This document shows, in pieces, positions 29,841-61,869 of a DNA stretch of 64,000 nucleotides. This DNA comes from Zygnema circumcarinatum SAG 698-1b (lineage: Eukaryota; Plantae; Zygnematophyceae): NCBI GenBank assembly GCA_037447605.1, contig CM074808.1, forward strand, positions 3,658,001 through 3,722,000, written 5' to 3'. Positions within the stretch are counted from its first letter, which is position 1, and every line of letters begins with the position of its first letter. A program made the position numbers and the translations under genes. Below the pieces are notes generated by a model. That model had not been told where the DNA came from. It saw nothing but the letters and a program-made list of their open reading frames with translations, and made no database searches.

Positions 29841-30997
29841 TCAGGGAGCTTTCCAAGGAAGGGGAACCTCAAAGGGAAGCCAACTCCAGCTCCGAACATC
29901 GTTTGTGGTTGTGGGAGGAGGATCCACATTAGTTGGGCGTTCAATGGCTTCCGGTGGAGGAGGAGATGGGGGAGGGGGAGAGGGAGAGGGGGGAGGAGGA
30001 GAGGGAGGAGGGGGAGGGGGCGATGGAGGAGGGGGAGGGGGAGAGGGAGGAGGGGGAGGGNNNNNNNNNNGGGAGGGAGGAGGGGGAGGGGGAGAGGGAG
30101 GGGGAGGGGACGAGGGAGGGGGGGGAGAAGCCTCAGGCGGAGGGGGAGAGGGTGGGGGAGGGGAGGGAGAGAGTGGAGGGGGGGATTCTGCGGGGGGTGA
30201 AGGAGGCGGAGGAGGAATATTAGCAGCCCAGGAGTAGACCATGTAGTTATTCCTATATTCCATCATAGTGTTCCGCTGGTCGTCTGAGAGAACCTTATCC
30301 CAGGGATTGCGTATAGTAACGTCACTACAATCAGGATTAGGGGTAACCGGGTCGGTACCGCATGCGTTGAACTCGAAATCTTTGTATGAAGCTGAGAAGG
30401 GCTCATAGCTGTAGTCGGACTGAAAACAAGAAACAAGCGAAACTTGCACAATAGCTCAAACATCTGAAAAGTAGGAGTAGAATGCTCAGAATAGAATTGA
30501 ACGAAGAACAGTAAGAAGGTGCAAAATGAACCCTAAAATGATTCAAGGCTTACCTTAATGTCTCCGTTTTCTGTTGCCCATTGAGAGCCATCCCAAATGC
30601 TCCCGTACGCATACATGGGCTGATGGATGCTCTCATCCGACCAGGGGTCGGACGGGTCGAATCGAATCTCACGGAGAGGGATATCATCGATAGAAATGCT
30701 GCATGCATGCCACGTGCTGGAGGGTTAGGCTCACTCTGTCACGTGGGAGAGGGAGAGAGACGGGGCGGAGATGCGGGGAGCGCGCAGGGAAGAGCTGGAA
30801 GAGGGAGGAGAGAGGAGCAGGAAAAGGAGAGGGAGAAGGGAACGGTAGTGGTAGCAAAGCCAGAGGGAGCAGGAGATGAAGAAAGAAAGAAAGAAAGGAC
30901 TGGAAGGGGAGGCGGTGAGGGCTCTGTAGATGTTGAGGAGAAAGAAAGGGAGGGACAGATGCAGGAGCAGGAGAGCATGCGCGAACAACGCAAGGAG

Positions 30998-51728: not shown

Positions 51729-53917
51729 TTAGCATCCATTGCTATAACCAGCTGATTTTTTAGGCAAACAATACAAAGCACCAACTTGCAGCTTGTCTTT
51801 GCAAGTTTGTCCGTTTACGCTACTGAAGACGGTTTGTGACGAGTGATAATGCGCGCTGAGCACAGCGGTGCAATAATCTCCCAATTTCACCTTATAACAC
51901 TGGCCGGAGGAACATGATGAGCACAAACAGCAGCTGGTTACAACTGCGTTACAGCTCGTCGCGACTAATGCGGGCATGATTACCAGACTCCTCCCCTCAG
52001 CTACCTCCGTTTTGGGAGGGACAATTGGCTGGTAAGGGTAAGTGCACACCTGGCAAGGAGATATGGGAGGATCAGGACATACGCATTTTGTTTTGCACGA
52101 GGGGAGGGGGAGAGGGGAAAGAGAAGAGGGAGGAGGAAGGAGAGGAAGTGGGGGGGGGGGGGGGACGATGGGAAGAGGGGAGGGAGAGGGGGGTGTGATC
52201 ATGTGGAGGGGAGAGAAAGGAGGGAGGTTGGTGGGAGAGGGCATTATGAAGGGGAGAGAAAGGGAGATGGAGAGACGCCTACATGAAAGACGGAGGAAGG
52301 AGGGAAGTGGAAAAGGAGGGGAGGGAGATGTTGAGGAACCGTACGAGAGGACGATAGAGAGAAAGAGAGACGGGCGGAGGAGAATTGAAGCGAGGGAAAA
52401 TGATGGACGAATAGAGTGGGGAGAAAACGAATTGCCAAAGGTGTGACGTAATGGAAAGGGAAATCAGATAGTGGGACACGGCGAGAGAGCGAGGTAAAAA
52501 CTGAGAGATAAAGGGAACGAGGGGGGAATGAAGAGAAGGGGAGAGGCAAAGTGGAGTGGAAAGTGAAGAGAGGAGAGAGAAGAGGTGAGCAGGCTCACCT
52601 CCTGCCCGGGCTGCAGTAGGTCACATTGTAGGCCAGGATTGAGTGTATAGTAGAGGAGGGGGAAATTGCTCGTTTTCCGAATAATGGAAGGACATGTGTC
52701 CCCAACTTCAGCCGCAACAAAGCTCCCGCAGGGATAGCCCAGCGCTGTGACGTAGCCAAACTGGACACATATCTGCAAAATGAAGGGGTCCCACAAACAT
52801 GAGGCTGGGTGGGAAGAGAGTGAGGGAGGGTGGGAGATTGGTAGGAGTGGGAAGATTTGTATTCAGGGGGTTGCTTACTTGACTGGTTTATACAGGTTTC
52901 CTGTCAAAAAGAGAGAATGAGGTAAACTCACTGTGGTTCGCGCTGTGCAGTTGTAATCCATATCGCTGTTTAACATCCTTAAATCAATCTCAGAAATTCC
53001 AAAGTTGGATGCTATGGATGTGCAGTTATCCGCCTGCATAAGCCAAAGCGCTAAGTTGAACGATCAAGCATGGAAATGTGCTAGAAAAGACGCGAATGTG
53101 CTATGTTTTACAGAAACCAAACTTTAGCTTCAAAACATGCCTTCGCAAGACCCTACTTCGCCCACAAGCCTTATAATCAATGTTCATACAATTACATTCA
53201 ACAACTTCTTCAAAATCACATTGAAAACAAAGCAACTCAAAAGGGCAGCTACAAGTGGATGATTGGCTTGCACGCTGCCAAGAATTCAGAAAAAAAAATT
53301 TAAAAAGAGGAATTAATGGGTCAACAACTGACCTCATCCGTTGTCTGAATCTGATAGAGAAGTGCGCATTGATCAGTGGTTTCGGAAACCGGACCAATGT
53401 TGACAACTGTTCCAGCGGTTATGTTGTTTGTACAGTCCAATCCCTGTTTGGAAATGTAAGGGAAACTTGTTATCATTCCAATTCATATCATATTCGTATT
53501 GGTTCGTTCCTATTTATAATTGCTGTTCAAATTACTGCATTGTTACAGTCACAATGTGGTATGCACTTTCAGCAGGCCTTAACCAGAGTATGTAGTCCTT
53601 AATAAACTGCACCGTAAAAATTGATAAATTGGAGAAGCTCCTGAGGCAGGCTAAGAAAATCTGCTCTAGTTGCCCTTTCCATGCATAGCAGCTTTCTACC
53701 TTACCTTTTGCTTTAAAGTTTATCCTTTCTCAGCTTCCCGTTCACAATATGCCAATGTATGAAGCAAAGTAATCAGAATTCAAGAATTTAAGCTGAGGCA
53801 TTACCGGATTAATGATCAAGAATGTGTACGGACTAAGCGCGCCTCGGAGAGTATCACACGTGTCCCCTTCTTCGGCAGTTAAAGAGTTGTTTGGGGACAG
53901 AGCATTGGTGTAAATAT
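51729..53917 (-). other. Four LysM domains (fungal/algal Cys-flanked type) within the mosaic gene
   Basis: [10 protein letters not shown]...FLIINP|GLDC; YQIQTTDE|[22 protein letters not shown]; [12 protein letters not shown]...[16 protein letters not shown]|VC; [12 protein letters not shown]...[17 protein letters not shown]. Confidence 0.8.
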
Positions 53918-56900
53918 CTGCTCATACAAACACACAAAAGCAATATAAATATCTCTCCGATCAAACACCAAGTCTGAGGGTTTGAGGTAAAAAGCGAGTC
54001 ACGAACAACCAAGACGACTTTTTTGAAATTCTCTTTTTGCATGGAGGTTATCTGTTTTCTATATTGAAATCCTTACCGGGTGCTGAACAGGTGATTGATG
54101 AATCCGCAAGTAGAGTCGGAGTAAAGCCTGCTTCCTCGGGGCAAGTACAAATGTACCCTCCGATTCCATCATTTTCACAAGTTCCGATCCCGCACGGATT
54201 TACGTATTGAGAATTGCAGACATCCACTGTGTAATCACACAAAAAAGTGAAACAGAAGAGCAAGCAAGTTCAGAAGGAGTTCAACTCGATGTACTACCCA
54301 ACCAAAGGGAACGGCGACCCCAAATTCATCAACTACAAAACACAATATTAATATTAAAAATAACACACGTCAAAACATAACAGCAAGATAATACAACTTA
54401 ATCACACAGTAATTATCATTACAGGCAGAATAAGGTAAGATAGAATGCAGGAGGAGCGTACCCAGAACGCAAGCAGGTCTCCCATCTGTATTTTGCAGAG
54501 TTACATATCCTTCAGGGCAATCACATGTGTATCCGACACCTGAACTTTGTTCTGAAGTGTCGTTTAGGACCCTGCATCTTCCTCCTCCACATGTGAGAAA
54601 TGGGATTCCAGTAGCAGTACAGCTATCTGGGAAAAAAGGGGGTGGAGGGCTGGGAGGAGGGGAAGGAGGAGGGGGAGGACTTGGGGGAGGAGGGGAAGGA
54701 GGTGGCGGAGAAGGTGGAGGAGGAGAAAAAAGAGGGGGGAAGGGAGGGGGAGGGGCAGTGGGAGGGAAAGGGGAAGAACTCCCTGGTGAAGGAGAAGGGG
54801 CGGGAGCAAACGGAGGGAAAGGGGAAGGAGGGCAAGGAGGTAGGTCGGAGAAAGGAGATGGAGTTGGAGAGTCAAGAGGGGGGAAGCTGGGGAAGGGAGC
54901 TGGTGCAGGTGCGGGAGAGGGCAATGGAGTAGGGAAGTAGAGAGGGGAGGGAGAGTAGCGAGGGATGGAGGGAGCGAGGGAGGAAGGAGAAGGCGAAGGT
55001 GCGGGAGAGATCGGAGAAGGAGGATCAGGAGGTGGGAGGGCTGCTGGTGATTGAAAGAGTGGAGCAGGAGAGGGTTCAGCGATGAAAGAGAGAATGTGGC
55101 GAAGTGGACCCTTGCGAAACGAGTTATATAATGGTAGAGGGTTTGCGAGTTGAGAGGGCTTTGCAGATTCCAAGATACGATTGGGTTCACGAGGGGAGGG
55201 AAGGGGAGATGGTGGCTCTGAATTGCGGGGCCCATAGCAGAAGATAGAACTGATGTAATGTGATCCTTTCAACCTCCTGTAGGTCACATTAAACAAATAA
55301 ATGAAAAGAATCAGGCGCCATTCTGGATAGACAAGTTGACATCACACTTCAAAAGCAAGGTTGATAAGATATCGATCAGACTCACAGTTGCAGTTCCGAT
55401 GTACTCCTTGTGTTGTCATAGTACAGGTAGTAGCTGCTTCTACATCCTCCTTCACTGTGAAGCTCAAACCCATAGCAAAGTTGATTCTTTTGTTGGAAAT
55501 CAAGAACGTTATTCTTGATTGTTATAAGCCCAAACCGACCAGCCTTCTCGCCGAGGTCCATACATGGCTTCTCGTAAGTTGGTGTTTCTATGGATGAATG
55601 TGAGTTTCCAAGAATGATGGTGGTAGGGTTTGGCGAAGGAGATGAGGATGAGAGGCCGAAAGCAGGCAAGTGGCATTGAGGTCGTACTTCATGTTGCGCT
55701 GCTTCAGCTATTTTCACAAATTCCAAAAAGCGGAGTGGAAAATTAGTAAAAACATAAAAGGAGACTACTCGACCACTAGTCAAAGGATCTTTACGTGCAT
55801 GGTGAGAGACGTGGGGAGGGCGGGGGACCGAGAGAGTCAGAAATAGAGAGGAGAGCGAGAGGAAAGCATTGAGAGGGAGAGGAAGGGAGAGGCATAGAGC
55901 CGTAGAGTGAGAGGGCGAGGGAAAGTTGGAGTAAGAGAGAAAGGGAAAGAGTTAATGGTTATGTGCATGGCAAAGGTGACGCTGAGCTTACTGCACATAA
56001 TGTAGGCATCCACATTCTGTATCGTTTCAAAAGTAGTCAATGTTGACAGAAATATACACTCCGAGGATGAGATTACGTAGTTGAATCCAACACAGTGTTC
56101 CTTCTGAAAGCACAAACTTGTACAGTCTTCCGGTGTGCCCCTAATTGAGTCTCCCCTATCGGATCCAAGCCACATTGTTGATGCTTGATATGTGAGGCCA
56201 AGACATGGTCCTCCGCACAAATTGCTTGCTGCCCCCACACATTCAATGTAAAATAAAGAAAAAAGTGTCAAAGCTCGAAGAAAAAACTTCCGTTCGTGAA
56301 CAAACTTGCGGTCTTCTGCACTCTCTCTCTCTCTGCCAAACACAAAAGATAACTTCGTTGCTGCAGTGGTGTTGTGTTGCTAAGCCTTACTTACCACACT
56401 TAATGTAGGAATTAAGCTCCTCTACCTCGACACTCGAGACAGGATTACGATAGCTGTTGATCAAATAACATTCGTCCCCACTTGCTGATGTCATGAAGCC
56501 TGCACAGTGTTCGGTAATGTCGCATATAGCAGAACAGTTGGAAGGAACCGACATTTGTAGGCGCGATGAGGGGTAAGTATACTTTGCTAGTAGACTGTGG
56601 GTGTACACAGTTAACGGTTGAAACGTGTACCCCCAACAAAGGCCGCCGCAGGAAGAATGATAGCCTGAACACATACCCGCACCACTACTCAAATTCCTTA
56701 GGCCATCATTATTGAAAAATTCTTTATACAGTACACGTGTCAAAGATGTTACAGGAACATTTTAAGCTAGGGTTCGCAAACAAATGCTAAAGATATGTCA
56801 TTTCATAGAGGCTCTGCTCATCATTTGAAGAAGTTTCGGAAAGGAAAGGGAACAGCTGCTGCTGCTTACTTGGAGGAAGGGTTTTGCCAGTCGCGAAGGG

Positions 56901-59900
56901 GTCGCCATACCCTCCAATAATACCTGTACATTGTAGAACTTGGATGAGACCAGCATCAAAATTCGTCCTTAAGAAGATTTGAACGACTTGGTAAGCACTT
57001 CACATATGGTAAGCATGAATATGCGAGTATCCGGATCTATCGCTTTACCTCCATTACTATCATGCGCAGACTCCCTGATCGACAAGGTTTGTTGGGCTCG
57101 ACGTCTCACAGGGAACGCGGTCGTGTCGGCTGCACATTACAGCAATTAAAGCATTAAAGCATTAAAGCATGAAAATCTTTACCAATGTATGGAGTCTCAG
57201 GTTCCCACATTGCAGACGAAGAAGAACTAAAACGAATAATAAATGGATAGAGGGTACTTCGGTGACGGTATAACTTACGGAAGGCATTGACGACAGGATA
57301 GAGAGGGGATACAATGAGCATGTTGCACACGCCGGGACCCATCGCCATGTCCCTTTGAATCTTTATGTACCCGTCCGTGCCCCAAGCAGAGCCCCATGAG
57401 TTTCGTGCGAGCCAGTACGGACTTGGATCGTCGCCATAGCCGACAATCAGGAGATTGTGATCGACTGTGTCGAGATTGCAAGTTGAGCCGTAGGTGCCAT
57501 TGTAAATTTCGTCCTGTACAAACGATTAAGTTGAATGAGCACAAAGGCACTGTAGGATAAATAGAACTGCTTTGAACAGCCTAATGGATGTATGACAGGG
57601 AGATGCAGGAGGTGATTTTTCTATTCATTCGCTTTGCTCATTTTATGAACTCTGTCAATTTAAGGATAGCGCTCACTAATGAAGGCCCAAAGTCTCAATT
57701 CATGGAAAACTTACAGTATCTGTTATCCAATTCAGGAGACCCCCTCTTGTGGAAATTCCGATAATCACCGGCTGGTTTGCAACAGCTCGCATCAATGCCT
57801 TTGGATCCAATGGAGGGACCTTCTCCCAACCGATCACGGTATCCATTGCGAGAGGGCTCGTCTGCAAGCACAAACAGCTTCCATTGATTTGAGTGAAGGA
57901 GATACACAAATTCTAACTATTTTCTTTGTTGAAGGCTGGTATTATAAAAATATGTCGAAAATAGCTGAAAGTGAAAGAGAGAGCAATTGCTGTAGTACTT
58001 ACGCTGCTGCCATTGCATGATCCTCCACTGTTGTACTCCGATTCAGTTTGAACAAAACCACCTCGAGCAACATACTCCAACGCATCTTCAGGAAGACCTC
58101 CCGTGCAGTTATCAAATGTTTTGATAGCTTCACCGACGCAGTCGATCAGCTCTTCCACCGACAGGCGCTCAGAATAAGTTGAGTTATTCAAAAAAAGGTT
58201 GATCATCTGTGCAGCTTGAACTGCATCAACCGCTGAGTAAGCCCAGCTAGCAGCTGCGTGGGAAGGAAAGCAAAGACATGCGATTAGGGTTGCAGACTTA
58301 GGGTTTCTGTGGTTTTATGGCAGCAACAGTTAAAGACGAAAAGCAATTCCGCGCTTGTCTGAATTGCATGCAATTGCCTTTAATGATGATACAACCAACA
58401 CATTCTGTGATCAGAGGCTCACCACATTCCATCTGGTTGCGCACCGACTCGGCAAAAATATGCCTCCAATCGACTACTGCAGGGAGTGCTCCATCAGGAA
58501 TGCTCTCATAACGAGAAAACACGTTTTTCTTGATGAAGGCTATGTCTCTATAAATGGATGAAATGTTCAGGTTTAAGCCCGTGGTGAAGTTTCCACTTTT
58601 CCCGCCTAAAATGATCCTCTCGCTGGGAACGGAGGGTGCACCACATGTCACGTAGTCCGGTGTCACGTCACACTGCTGGACTTCGTCTCCAAAGATAAGC
58701 GGCTCCGGACACACGAAAATTTCCAGGACGGTTCCGTTTCCAGAGCAGCTGCAGTAGTGGCTGTAGCACAGAGGAAGGCGGAAAAATCATCTGTAAATCT
58801 CGGGCAGAATGACAACGAAATGGATAACAAGGGAATGAACATTTTCTCTTTTTTTTTTTTTGAAAAACAAAAAACAATATGACAAAGACAACTTGTTTTG
58901 ATGTAGATCTATTTCCGCTCGTTGTATTAAACAAATTTGGAGGGCAGTATTTGTAGGTCAGAGTTGACCCACCTGCAAAACGGAGGCTCGATTCGGCGAT
59001 CAGCAAAAAGGCCAGCGCTCTTATTGACACAGCATGTGTCCTCTATTCGCAACTGCATTCAAAGGGAAATCGAAGCATGAGTTTTGAGTTTCTCGGTGTG
59101 GTAAAACCGAAACATATCCTCAGAATTTGTAAGACTTGCACATCCAATGATTGCAATGAGAAAAGCAGGAAAGAAACAGGCAGGAAAGGAACATTCAACC
59201 TGCTTACTTTAGTTGAAGGTTCGAGATATGGTGGAGGAGGAGCTTGAAAGATCGGAGCTGGAGGCACTGGTGGATATGGAGGAGAAGGTGGAGGTGGATA
59301 TACAGGTCTGCATGGTGGAGGTGGGGGTAGAGCTGGAGTTGGGGAAGGACCTGGTGCTAGTGGAGGTGAAGTTGGGGGAGGTGGTGGAAGTGGTAGGTTT
59401 TCTGTAGGTGGCGGAAATCCTTCAGGCGATGAAGGTGGTGTGGGGACTAAAGGAGGTGATGGAGTGGGAGGTGAGGGAGGAGGAGAAGGGAACCTCCGCC
59501 TCTTTCCAACGCCGGGAGGATGCTTTCCAATTCCTGGAGGGTGCCTCCCTACGCCTGGCGGGTGTCTTCCAGAGGGGGGTATTCCGGGGACCCGCCTATT
59601 TCCTACTCCTGGAGGGTGATTTCCTACTCCCGGGGGATGTCTTCCGACCCCGGGAGGATGCCTCCCCTTAGGAACGGGTTGTCCAGAGGTTATATGACCG
59701 CCAACACCAGGTGGGTGCTTTCCAACACCGGGAGGATGCTTCCCATTCGTCTGTGGTAGTGAGGAGGGTGAGGAAGGGAGTGGGGGAGTGGTAGTAAGGG
59801 CCTGCAGAGACTGCAATGGAGGTTTCAGGAGGAACATGAATAGGGTTAGGTGTTGCCAATAGTGAAACGAAGTCAACAAACCATGTTCAGATGGAGGCAA

Positions 59901-60590
59901 AACTTGATTTTAACATCAAGGAAACCTTTTTTTTTTTTCGTTTGAAGTTCGGTTGAAAATTTGAGGTTAAGTTAAAGGACGACATTGGATTGTTCGTTAT
60001 TTGATGCTGGAATTATGATTGAGGACAAATCGAGTCCTTTTTGAGATAATCAGGTTTATTTGCTAAAGTCATCATCAACTTTTTTATCCAAAACCAGGGG
60101 GAAGATCATTTCTGATTGCCCATAAAAATCACACAAATTTTCCAACATGCATAAAGCAGCTGCACTTGAACATGATAAGGATGATATGTGATTATATGTG
60201 GTCGGCTGTATAGGGGCCCACCTCATTCTCAGTACCCTGCCACGTGTCTCCTGCCGCATCCTCCCAGCTGGCAAGCTCCCGTGCTACCACCGTAGCTTCC
60301 TCCTCTCCCTCACCCGCCAACTCGTTTCTCTCTCCCTCTCCCTCTCCCTCTCTCTCGTTCGCCCCCCTCATACTGTACCATTTAAGGGCCAACTGCTTCA
60401 AAGAACTGCTAACTGAGAAAGTCTCTTGGTCGGAGAACTTTTCCATGTCAGTTTCTGTTGGTTCGAAAGACCGGCTGTTGTGCTTTGGGTCGTTGGGCCA
60501 TTGAAAGAGGAAGGGGAGGTGTTGGTAGGAGAGTCTTGCTGACATCAGCAGGAGCGTGATGCAGAGAACAAACTGGGCTGCTGGCGTCAT
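51729..60590 (-). CDS. Secreted mosaic protein of about 1603 aa: SP, Pro/HPPG repeats, CBM14, papain C1A (Cys to Ser), PAN x2-3, extensin, EGF x2, LysM x4; 19 exons
   Basis: Manual exons (minus strand): 60590-60222, 59801-59208, 59052-58973, 58760-58423, 58253-58003, 57861-57715, 57513-57279, 57129-57049, 56923-56870, 56721-56395, 56228-55992, 55698-55386, 55276-54462, 54226-54077, 53917-53805, 53443-53333, 53033-52932, 52772-52599, 52049-51729. All are GT-AG and phase-compatible; total 4812 nt. The exon 1-2 junction is the least secure. Confidence 0.72.
54077..54630 (-). other. Two EGF-like domains within the mosaic gene
   Basis: C-x9-C-GGGR-C...YTCDCPEGY...C and C-x7-C-GIGT-C...YICTCPEE...C six-cysteine patterns. 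Confidence 0.85.
55386..56721 (-). other. Two clear and one possible PAN/apple domains within the mosaic gene
   Basis: [15 protein letters not shown]...ECYL; [17 protein letters not shown]...ECIF; a third weaker NQLCYGFE...GC. Confidence 0.7.
57279..58480 (-). other. Papain-family (C1A) domain with Ser at the catalytic Cys position
   Basis: LPAVVDWR...RNQMEC|AASWAYS; LSVEELIDC; [12 protein letters not shown]; AVANQPV; [10 protein letters not shown]; [20 protein letters not shown]. Confidence 0.9.
58643..59034 (-). other. CBM14 / peritrophin-A type chitin-binding domain split over two exons
   Basis: Spliced product [59 protein letters not shown] fits the six-Cys chitin-binding type 2 spacing (C2-x5-C3, CP..L.F....C). 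Confidence 0.75.
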
Positions 60591-61869
60591 CTTATTTCTC
60601 AGTAGAGAAGCTCCGAGCTGGAACTGAACTGCAACTAAATTTAACGGATTTTTGGCGCTGGGAAGGGACGTTCCTGCTCAGTTGATTGACCTGCGCAGAA
60701 AGGTTCAGAGAATAGAATTAAGTGCAGGAAAAATACAGCTACAGAAAGAGTGAGAGACAATTTATTACTAAAAGTTTACAGTTTTCGTTGCTTTGACATT
60801 TTTCCTCAATCTCTTCTTCTGCCAGCTCTTTCCTCCCTTTTGCTCTTCTTTCCCATCCCCTGCTGGGTCCCCTCCTCTCCTTCGGCCTCTCCCGCCCCTC
60901 CCATCTCACTCTCCCTGTTCCTCTTCCTTCCCTTTTCCCTCCCTCACCGGGCTCCCTCCTCCTCCTCCTCCTCCCTCCTCCTGTCTCTCGCCTTCCCTTC
61001 TACCTTTCCCCTTACCTGCCCCCTCCCCCTCCCCCTCTCCCTCTCCCTCTCCGCGCTCCAAAATGCCCCTTGAAACACTGCTAAAGCCCAATTTTGAGCT
61101 GAACATTTTCTGAAGATAAAAGTTGACTACAAACATTCAGGAGCTCAGAATGAGGAAGAAAACGAAAAATGACTTCCAGAGCTTATGATCTGCAAAGTGA
61201 TGTAGTTTTCTCCTGGAAAGACCCCAGCAGAAAAAGACTAGCCGAGGTGGCTCTAGTGAGAAAGAAAGGAAAGAGCCCGTGGGAAAGCTGGCAAGGAGGC
61301 CGTAAGAAGCAACGGAACTGATGGGTTCTATGGAGAGAGGATATGAAAGAAGGAGAGGTAGAGCCACATTGAGGAGGAGAGGGAGGGAGAGGAGCAAGGA
61401 GGGGGGAGAAGACGCCAGTACAAGAGAAAGGAGAAAGTGGGAGACAGGCAGACATGCAAAAGGACAGACACGGTGAGGGAGAGAGAGAGAGAAAGAGAGG
61501 GAGAGAAAGCGAATTTTCCTCCTACCTTTACCTGACAGCTCTGGAGGACACCCACGTCTGCGATAGAAGACGGGTCTAATTTCCCTCTTCTAAAAAGGCA
61601 GAAAAAGAGAGAGAATAAGAGAAAGAGTGGGAGAGAGAGAGAGAGGAAGTAGAAAGAGAAGGAGAGTGGGAGAAGGGGTGAGAGAGGCTTCAAGAGAGAG
61701 ATTCCAGGCCTTAATTTTCTAACTATTAAAATCTGCTTCTCTCATTAGTTGTCTGATGCGCCGAATGGAGGAACGGAGGGCGGCCGTTGGCCGGCCATCC
61801 AAAGGGAAGCCAAAAAACTAGCCGTTGGAAGGAGCCGGTCCGGACAAGGCGCCGCCGGATGCGGCCAAC

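Follow-up and report, generated by a model that had tools for sequence, protein, structure and literature searches.

What becomes of a papain-type domain whose catalytic cysteine has been exchanged for serine is the question raised by a locus of the streptophyte alga Zygnema circumcarinatum SAG 698-1b. The locus lies in a stretch of 64,000 nucleotides (contig CM074808.1 of assembly GCA_037447605.1, positions 3,658,001 to 3,722,000; hereafter the window, whose own numbering is used for this gene), and its minus strand encodes a mosaic protein in which a papain-family (C1A) domain stands beside a probable chitin-binding module (CBM14). A preliminary description of this DNA had reported an AGC codon in the place of the catalytic Cys, and had proposed either a binding pseudoprotease or an enzyme with changed chemistry. 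Papain catalysis depends on the pair formed by the Cys25 thiolate and the His159 imidazolium, which a Ser hydroxyl cannot form; therefore, the first of these proposals was also the best reading in the present analysis. With a probability of roughly 55%, the papain fold would hold peptides or proteins without cutting them, as part of a glycan-binding mosaic protein.

The window is eukaryotic DNA with a GC content of 48% and GT-AG introns, and the exons were traced manually in the sequence and in its translation in three frames. A complete C1A domain was obtained from four minus-strand exons, A to D (58760-58423, 58253-58003, 57861-57715 and 57513-57279). Exon A encodes the second half of the CBM14, then a 59-residue linker and, at its 3' end (58424-58486), the start of the mature papain-type domain (LPAVVDWR...VRNQMEC), a piece too short to be scored alone against the PDB, which was aligned by eye to the DWR...NQxxC of papain. 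This piece carries the oxyanion Gln19 (CAG, 58433-58435) and Cys22 (58424-58426), and finishes with AAC CAG ATG GAA TGT G before the donor GTGAGC, its last base (58423) opening a split codon. The phase-1 intron that follows (58254-58422, GTGAGC...CAG) interrupts the active-site motif after Cys22, ahead of residue 23. After the acceptor ACGCAG, exon B opens at 58253 with CT GCT AGC TGG GCT TAC TCA, and the joined active site reads NQMEC/AASWAYS (the slash marking the intron), with AGC (Ser) at 58246-58248 in the place of the catalytic Cys25. Only the acceptor at 58254/58253 fits the split codon and the phases; the next AG, four bases downstream, was ruled out because it breaks the frame. An alternative exon restoring Cys was not found either, the C-W motif being absent from all three frames of the 58254-58422 intron.

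Exon B (58003-58253), which runs from A-A-S-WAYS to GGSCNGSS, was assigned by a match to Pfam Peptidase_C1 (E 4e-10, profile positions 26-90) and by PDB alignments, and also carries Cys56, Cys63 and the substrate-cleft Gly-Gly (CTGG). The middle of the domain (VIGWEKVP...) is supplied by exon C (57715-57861), which has phase-0 GT-AG borders and was aligned to plant enzymes. Exon D (57279-57513; Peptidase_C1 E 7e-16, profile positions 154-211) contains His159 (57457-57459), Asn175 (57400-57402, within NSWG), Trp177, Cys153 and Cys200, and ends the domain with SPLYPVV before the donor C/GTAAGT that follows 57279. Gln19, His159, Asn175, Trp177, the cleft Gly-Gly and the cysteines of all three papain disulfides were retained, and the reading frame and every GT-AG border were intact across the domain. 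The earlier statement that Gln, His and Asn (NSWG) remain in place was therefore borne out, their codons having been located in exons A and D.

Public sequencing runs were used to examine the splice and the codon. The stretch or a part of it occurs in twenty of them. Words sampled from 56800-59100 were all present in six DNA-type runs belonging to three studies, possibly of the source strain, and four other runs were aligned to 54650-60640. A contig of 295 nt from run X20 joins 58077-58253 to 58423-58540, skipping 169 bases bordered by GT..AG on the minus strand, and carries the AGC codon with zero mismatches and with 118 letters on its shorter side. The splice 58253/58423 and the AGC codon were thus confirmed in a spliced transcript. 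Further X20 contigs from the gene body fell inside predicted exons (58555-58710, 59283-59331, 59302-59504 and 59603-59756) at depths of 2-6, and run X7 gave unspliced pieces over two intron borders, with no mismatch, which may represent genomic DNA or pre-mRNA.

The exons were also compared with all PDB sequences by phmmer, and exons B, C and D each matched plant papain-like proteases best. The Ser of exon B stood opposite Cys25 of dionain-1, caricain and barley EP-B2; together with the spliced contig, this alignment corroborated the reported replacement of the catalytic Cys. Exon C was aligned to residues 109-142 of the castor endopeptidase 1S4V, of ficins and of triticain, and the top matches of exon D (about 1e-15) were to the C-terminal third of procerain, triticain-alpha, ananain and ficins. 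The cathepsin-silicatein chimera 2VHS ranked 46th for exon D and was not among the matches of exon B. As regards C1A membership, the domain matches the Peptidase_C1 profile and has His159, Asn175, Gln19 and Trp177, but lacks both the Cys25 nucleophile and an I29 prodomain. Since Ser occupies the Cys25 position, it is by the usual naming a non-peptidase homologue of C1A and not a cysteine peptidase. The Ser-His-Asn site is that of a silicatein, but the best matches, being to plant enzymes, place the domain outside the animal cathepsin L/silicatein clade; because the chimera ranked so far below those enzymes, the Cys-to-Ser swap appears to be convergent with that of silicatein. Likewise, the architecture of the apicomplexan SERA proteins is absent, the flanks here being CBM14 and PAN-like modules, and the resemblance to Ser-type SERA is functional and not by descent.

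A full HMMER search with exon B over 1.84 billion representatives, at E up to 0.001, gave 12 matches, of which P0002, P0006 and P0007 were true close relatives; the product of the gene itself was not among the 12. P0001, P0003, P0008 and P0012 were discarded as repeat or low-complexity matches, P0008 being judged by its length of 5436 amino acids and its short match. Further word-index protein searches returned only Trinity isoforms of P0007 and two fragments already known. P0002, an open reading frame (ORF) fragment of 85 residues, lies on L001, a Logan contig of 6.5 kb; another fragment, P0006, lies on L002, an ENA contig of 5.6 kb; and P0007 is a EukProt Trinity ORF (DN826) from a protist or alga, with the isoforms P0013 and P0014. 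P0007 and its two isoforms begin at an internal Met (MINLFL) equivalent to one in exon B, downstream of the nucleophile position, which suggests an upstream stop, perhaps in a retained intron. They are 69-72% identical to exon D and then run into an Ala/Ser-rich tail without PAN, EGF or LysM. This gene, L001, L002 and P0007 appear to constitute a distinct subgroup.

The gene on L001 has, in order, G-x-HPPG-x-G repeats, a proline-rich part, a CBM14 (Pfam E 5.4e-4), a linker (NYTTGLDLD), the papain domain, a PAN-like stretch and SPPPP repeats. Its HPPG array (3480-3900 of L001, plus strand), built from the units HPPGKG and HPPGVG, is longer than that of the window. The identity to exons B, C and D was 58, 48 and 59%, respectively, in global alignment. 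Its active site reads SQGSC/N-G-S-W-A-Y-S, with Ser encoded by AGT and with a phase-1 intron (GTAAGT...CAG) at the same place. No significant similarity was detected between its PAN-like piece and the PAN-like exon of the window, and past the papain domain the shared architecture therefore consists in module order alone.

L001 has a GC content of 43% against 48% in the window, a third-position GC of 0.34-0.46 against 0.43-0.63 in the homologous exons, and shorter introns; between the two genes the proportion of synonymous differences (pS) was 0.87, which is saturated, and that of nonsynonymous differences (pN) was 0.35. Base composition, intron length and saturated pS thus point either to another organism's gene or to a duplicate of great age, and not to an allele. 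In each papain exon pN was 0.28-0.39 and pS was 0.71 or higher; since the saturation of synonymous sites makes a dN/dS ratio unusable, the statement is limited to pN lying well below pS. As pS is saturated while pN is only 0.35, the papain domain has probably been under purifying selection since the split from L001. Ser was kept while about 40% of the residues of the domain changed, and so were all the disulfide cysteines and all the catalytic-site residues except Cys25 in both Ser-type genes.

The more distant L002 has the same intron position and the motifs GWEKVP, DHNLVVVGY and PIYPVV, and its active site reads NQQDC/N-A-C-W-A-F-S, with Cys encoded by TGC. No CBM14 was found upstream in L002, and this nearest Cys-type relative seems to differ in architecture. 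After its papain domain (4954-5445 of L002, plus strand) there is a 163-residue open stretch with no Pfam match. As a background for the count of Cys and Ser, a metagenome scan with the exon-D alignment was carried out. The 80 loci that it yielded, with identities of 35-60%, were generic C1A loci, and the subgroup to which the Ser-type gene belongs was not represented among them. Cys occupied the nucleophile position in every one of the 50 loci with a recognisable Q...C..xW motif (50/50); Ser is therefore not a common variant, and is rare at the place of Cys25. Since L002 also has Cys, Cys is probably the ancestral state and Ser the derived one. AGY is one transversion away from TGY, and an AGY Ser is common to both HPPG-CBM14 genes.

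The preliminary description had held that the change looked targeted rather than due to decay. Decay is indeed contradicted by the intact frame, by the transcription of the gene and by the Ser of the divergent homologue L001. Nevertheless, "targeted" was an overstatement, since TGC to AGC takes one base. Two of the eight residue-altering single-base changes of TGC give Ser, which is the least disruptive of these changes. It is the long retention of Ser, and not the kind of substitution, that argues for function. No TGC was seen at this codon in the reads, no splice restored Cys, and the one comparable homologue (L001) has Ser.

The course of events may be pictured as follows. The gene would be an intact, transcribed member of an algal mosaic family that pairs lectin modules with a papain domain, in the order HPPGVG repeats, proline-rich stretch, CBM14 and papain fold, the last probably followed by PAN-like modules, by an extensin stalk and by EGF and LysM. 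At position 25, the TGY (Cys) of the ancestor would have become AGY (Ser), which was retained thereafter; fold, cleft, Gln, His and Asn would have been conserved, in a site where the thiolate-imidazolium pair could no longer arise. The cleft would then hold peptides or proteins uncut, as a substrate-trap, adhesion or decoy module, and the flanking modules would position it on GlcNAc-containing glycans (chitin, peptidoglycan) or in the cell wall. Of this, the sequence, its splice, its transcription and the conserved Ser of a second sequence were observed directly, and secretion, the loss of proteolysis and the binding role were deduced.

This reading draws on Plasmodium falciparum SERA5, which has the same Ser-His-Asn site and displayed neither detectable protease activity nor labelling by a serine-hydrolase probe (PMC4671257). 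Exchange of its Ser for Cys produced an active cysteine protease (PMC4671257), so the cleft of SERA5 binds peptides. In the parasite, the domain was essential, and a Ser-to-Ala change was tolerated with no phenotype and a bulky Arg was not, from which the authors concluded an essential non-enzymatic role (PMC4671257). Classic work cited in the same paper had established that archetypal papain-type enzymes lose their activity entirely or in large part once the Cys is replaced (PMC4671257). The SERA5 analogy and the purifying selection on fold and cleft thus favour a binding module. Other points weigh in the opposite direction. The Ser-type sequences of the subfamily are two in number, and their single origin of Ser is a probable one, deduced from architecture and codon family; the transcript support consists of one low-depth spliced contig (depth 2.9) from one run, X20; and the retention of Gln19, His159 and Asn175 in both Ser-type genes would be equally expected of an active Ser-His enzyme.

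Such an enzyme, a serine protease or esterase with a papain fold, would work with Ser25, His159 and Asn175 and be delivered to chitin or peptidoglycan by CBM14 and LysM. The survival of Gln19, His159, Asn175, Trp177 and the Gly-Gly in both Ser-type genes despite saturated synonymous divergence would suit it well, as would the identity of the replacement, Ser being in both genes the sole residue besides Cys able to act as a nucleophile. Nevertheless, Ser is also the most conservative single-step replacement of Cys, which needs no catalytic explanation, and the His is backed here by Asn and not by Asp. Moreover, the archetypal enzymes lose all or much of their activity when Cys is replaced, and SERA5, with the same site, was inactive and unlabelled (PMC4671257). 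A working hydrolase was hence considered unlikely, although it deserves to be kept in view. Another account is that catalysis was lost neutrally in a redundant paralogue of a large family, the papain domain being a passenger of selected binding modules or in decay. One base change suffices for this, and the transcript level is apparently low; but the domain has an unbroken frame and intact GT-AG borders throughout, pN lies well below pS in each papain exon, and both genes have kept the disulfide cysteines and, apart from Cys25, the residues of the catalytic site, all of which makes a neutral loss improbable.

The preliminary description had also named silica or mineral condensation, by analogy with silicateins, as a possible changed chemistry. 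The idea gained no support, and a silicatein-like catalyst or template for mineral condensation was regarded as extremely improbable. The Ser-His-Asn site in a papain fold is all that speaks for it. Every exon is closest to plant papain-like proteases, with 2VHS 46th for exon D and absent for exon B, and the flanking modules bind sugars and not minerals; silica deposition is not known from this algal group. In addition, the triad mechanism is itself disputed, since mutagenesis of silicatein and cathepsin L contradicts it and silica is formed in vitro by cathepsin L as well (PMC6233156).

The modules around the papain domain, all on the minus strand, bear on where such binding would take place. 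The first half of the CBM14 was read from the sequence on an exon of its own (58973-59052), probably joined in phase (AG/C) to exon A; alone, this 43-residue piece gave no Pfam match. The second half, at the start of exon A (58664-58760), matched CBM_14 (PF01607; peritrophin-A, chitin-binding) with E 5.5e-4 over positions 18-53 of the 53 in the profile, its 20.5 bits, against a cut-off of 22.1, being scored without the other half on the separate exon. This match, directly upstream of the papain domain, supported the earlier placing of CBM14 where a prodomain would be expected. The 59-residue linker between the two (58487-58663) bears the motif NFTTGLNLN, and neither in it nor in its L001 counterpart was any Pfam match, I29 or other, found at E up to 10, which upheld the reported absence of an I29 prodomain. 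A reading of the linker as the remnant of an I29 propeptide, prompted by the G-x-N-x-F-x-D-like GLNLNIS, was dropped, as Pfam lent it no support. The motif N-[FY]-T-T-G-L-[ND]-L-[ND], with N-x-T glycosylation sequons, is common to this gene and to L001 (4514-4690). The linker may serve as a glycosylated hinge, or as a short segment that occupies the cleft.

Further upstream, an exon at 59480-59760 (read from the sequence and touched by X20 contigs) encodes about ten G-x-HPPGVG units with a 21-base period, followed by a proline-rich stretch; this His-rich repeat has no Pfam match, though it is kept in this gene and in L001. On the other side, two PAN/Apple-like exons (56664-56395 and 56228-55992) were recognised by phase-1 joins and GT-AG borders, with phases worked by hand. 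The phase-1 donor after 57279 fits the acceptor of the first of them, and the first fits the second. The second gave weak matches to Pfam PAN_4 and PAN_1 (about 6e-4, below the curated cut-off), and the first gave none. The probable rest of the gene (51756-55250), read from single open stretches and weak Pfam matches, contains an SPPPP stalk of extensin type, two modules resembling EGF (weak Pfam EGF; about 54597-54466 and 54203-54084) and three or four resembling LysM (weak Pfam LysM; about 53873, 53033, 52709 and 51890-51756). Phase and consensus suggest that the PAN-like junctions are correct and that the EGF-LysM tail is continuous with the papain exons, and the types of module suggest that the protein is secreted.

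An ORF from 60590, signal-peptide-like and then Glu/Gly-rich, was considered as exon 1 and dropped, its depth being 10-30 times that of the papain exons in three runs. It may be a separate, well-expressed neighbouring gene rather than the first exon of the mosaic. One X20 contig touches only 60575-60640, inside this doubtful signal-like ORF. Over 60365-60640, contigs of three runs at 64-99x extend past 60640, and the papain exons were covered at 2-7x or uncovered. The window also has an assembly gap of 10 N (30061-30070), far from the papain-mosaic gene.

Papain homologues with Ser for Cys were already known; what is new is a conserved Ser-type subgroup with a head of HPPG repeats and CBM14, represented by two sequences. 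No paper was found on this mosaic family in streptophyte algae, or on run SRR9302961. Such swaps have come about repeatedly (SERA, silicatein, testin, TINAG), and their roles are debated; the present case extends the series to a lineage of streptophyte algae, where the swap has persisted through a deep divergence in a protein built of modules that bind chitin and peptidoglycan. If binding without cutting is indeed what the domain does, the gene becomes a candidate for a wall-anchored capture or decoy protein in interactions between microbes and algae. The pair of natural Cys and Ser relatives also offers a means of probing what a serine-type papain cleft can do. A far broader and quite speculative generalisation, to which little probability was assigned, is that the Ser-type papain domains of algal mosaics are conserved extracellular recognition modules, or alternatively true papain-fold serine hydrolases. 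As recognition modules, they would present a dead cleft on chitin- and peptidoglycan-binding arms that captures microbial proteins or soaks up microbial protease inhibitors as a decoy. Land-plant immunity, with its logic of proteases and decoys, would then have an early counterpart among the streptophytes.

Among the known systems, SERA5 of P. falciparum is the best-studied case of such a domain, binding peptides in a non-enzymatic role (PMC4671257). It resembles the algal domain in the Ser at the Cys25 position, in the retained His and Asn and in an extracellular or secreted setting, which for the alga is a presumed one. It differs in belonging to an unrelated lineage with an independent substitution and with flanks of its own, without CBM14, PAN, EGF or LysM, and its sequence similarity to the algal domain is no higher than that of any C1A member. 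Sponge silicatein-alpha likewise has a Ser-His-Asn site, in a fold of cathepsin-L type, but it is a member of the animal cathepsin L clade, retains its propeptide and forms filaments in spicules, whereas the algal domain is closest to plant enzymes, has no I29 region and is part of a glycan-binding mosaic.

In mammals, testin and TINAG/TINAGL1 are homologues of the papain family found outside the cell, where, with Ser in place of the catalytic Cys, they serve as matrix or adhesion proteins; they differ from the algal gene in belonging to the animal cathepsin L or B clades, in their other accessory domains and in their independent origin. The closest solved relatives of every exon are procerain, triticain-alpha, ananain, the ficins and the castor KDEL endopeptidase. 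These land-plant papain-like proteases share with the algal domain the disulfide pattern, Gln19, His159, Asn175 and NSWG. In contrast, these enzymes carry Cys25, possess an I29 prodomain and consist of a single domain or bear a granulin tail, whereas the algal gene has Ser, no prodomain and lectin-type neighbours.

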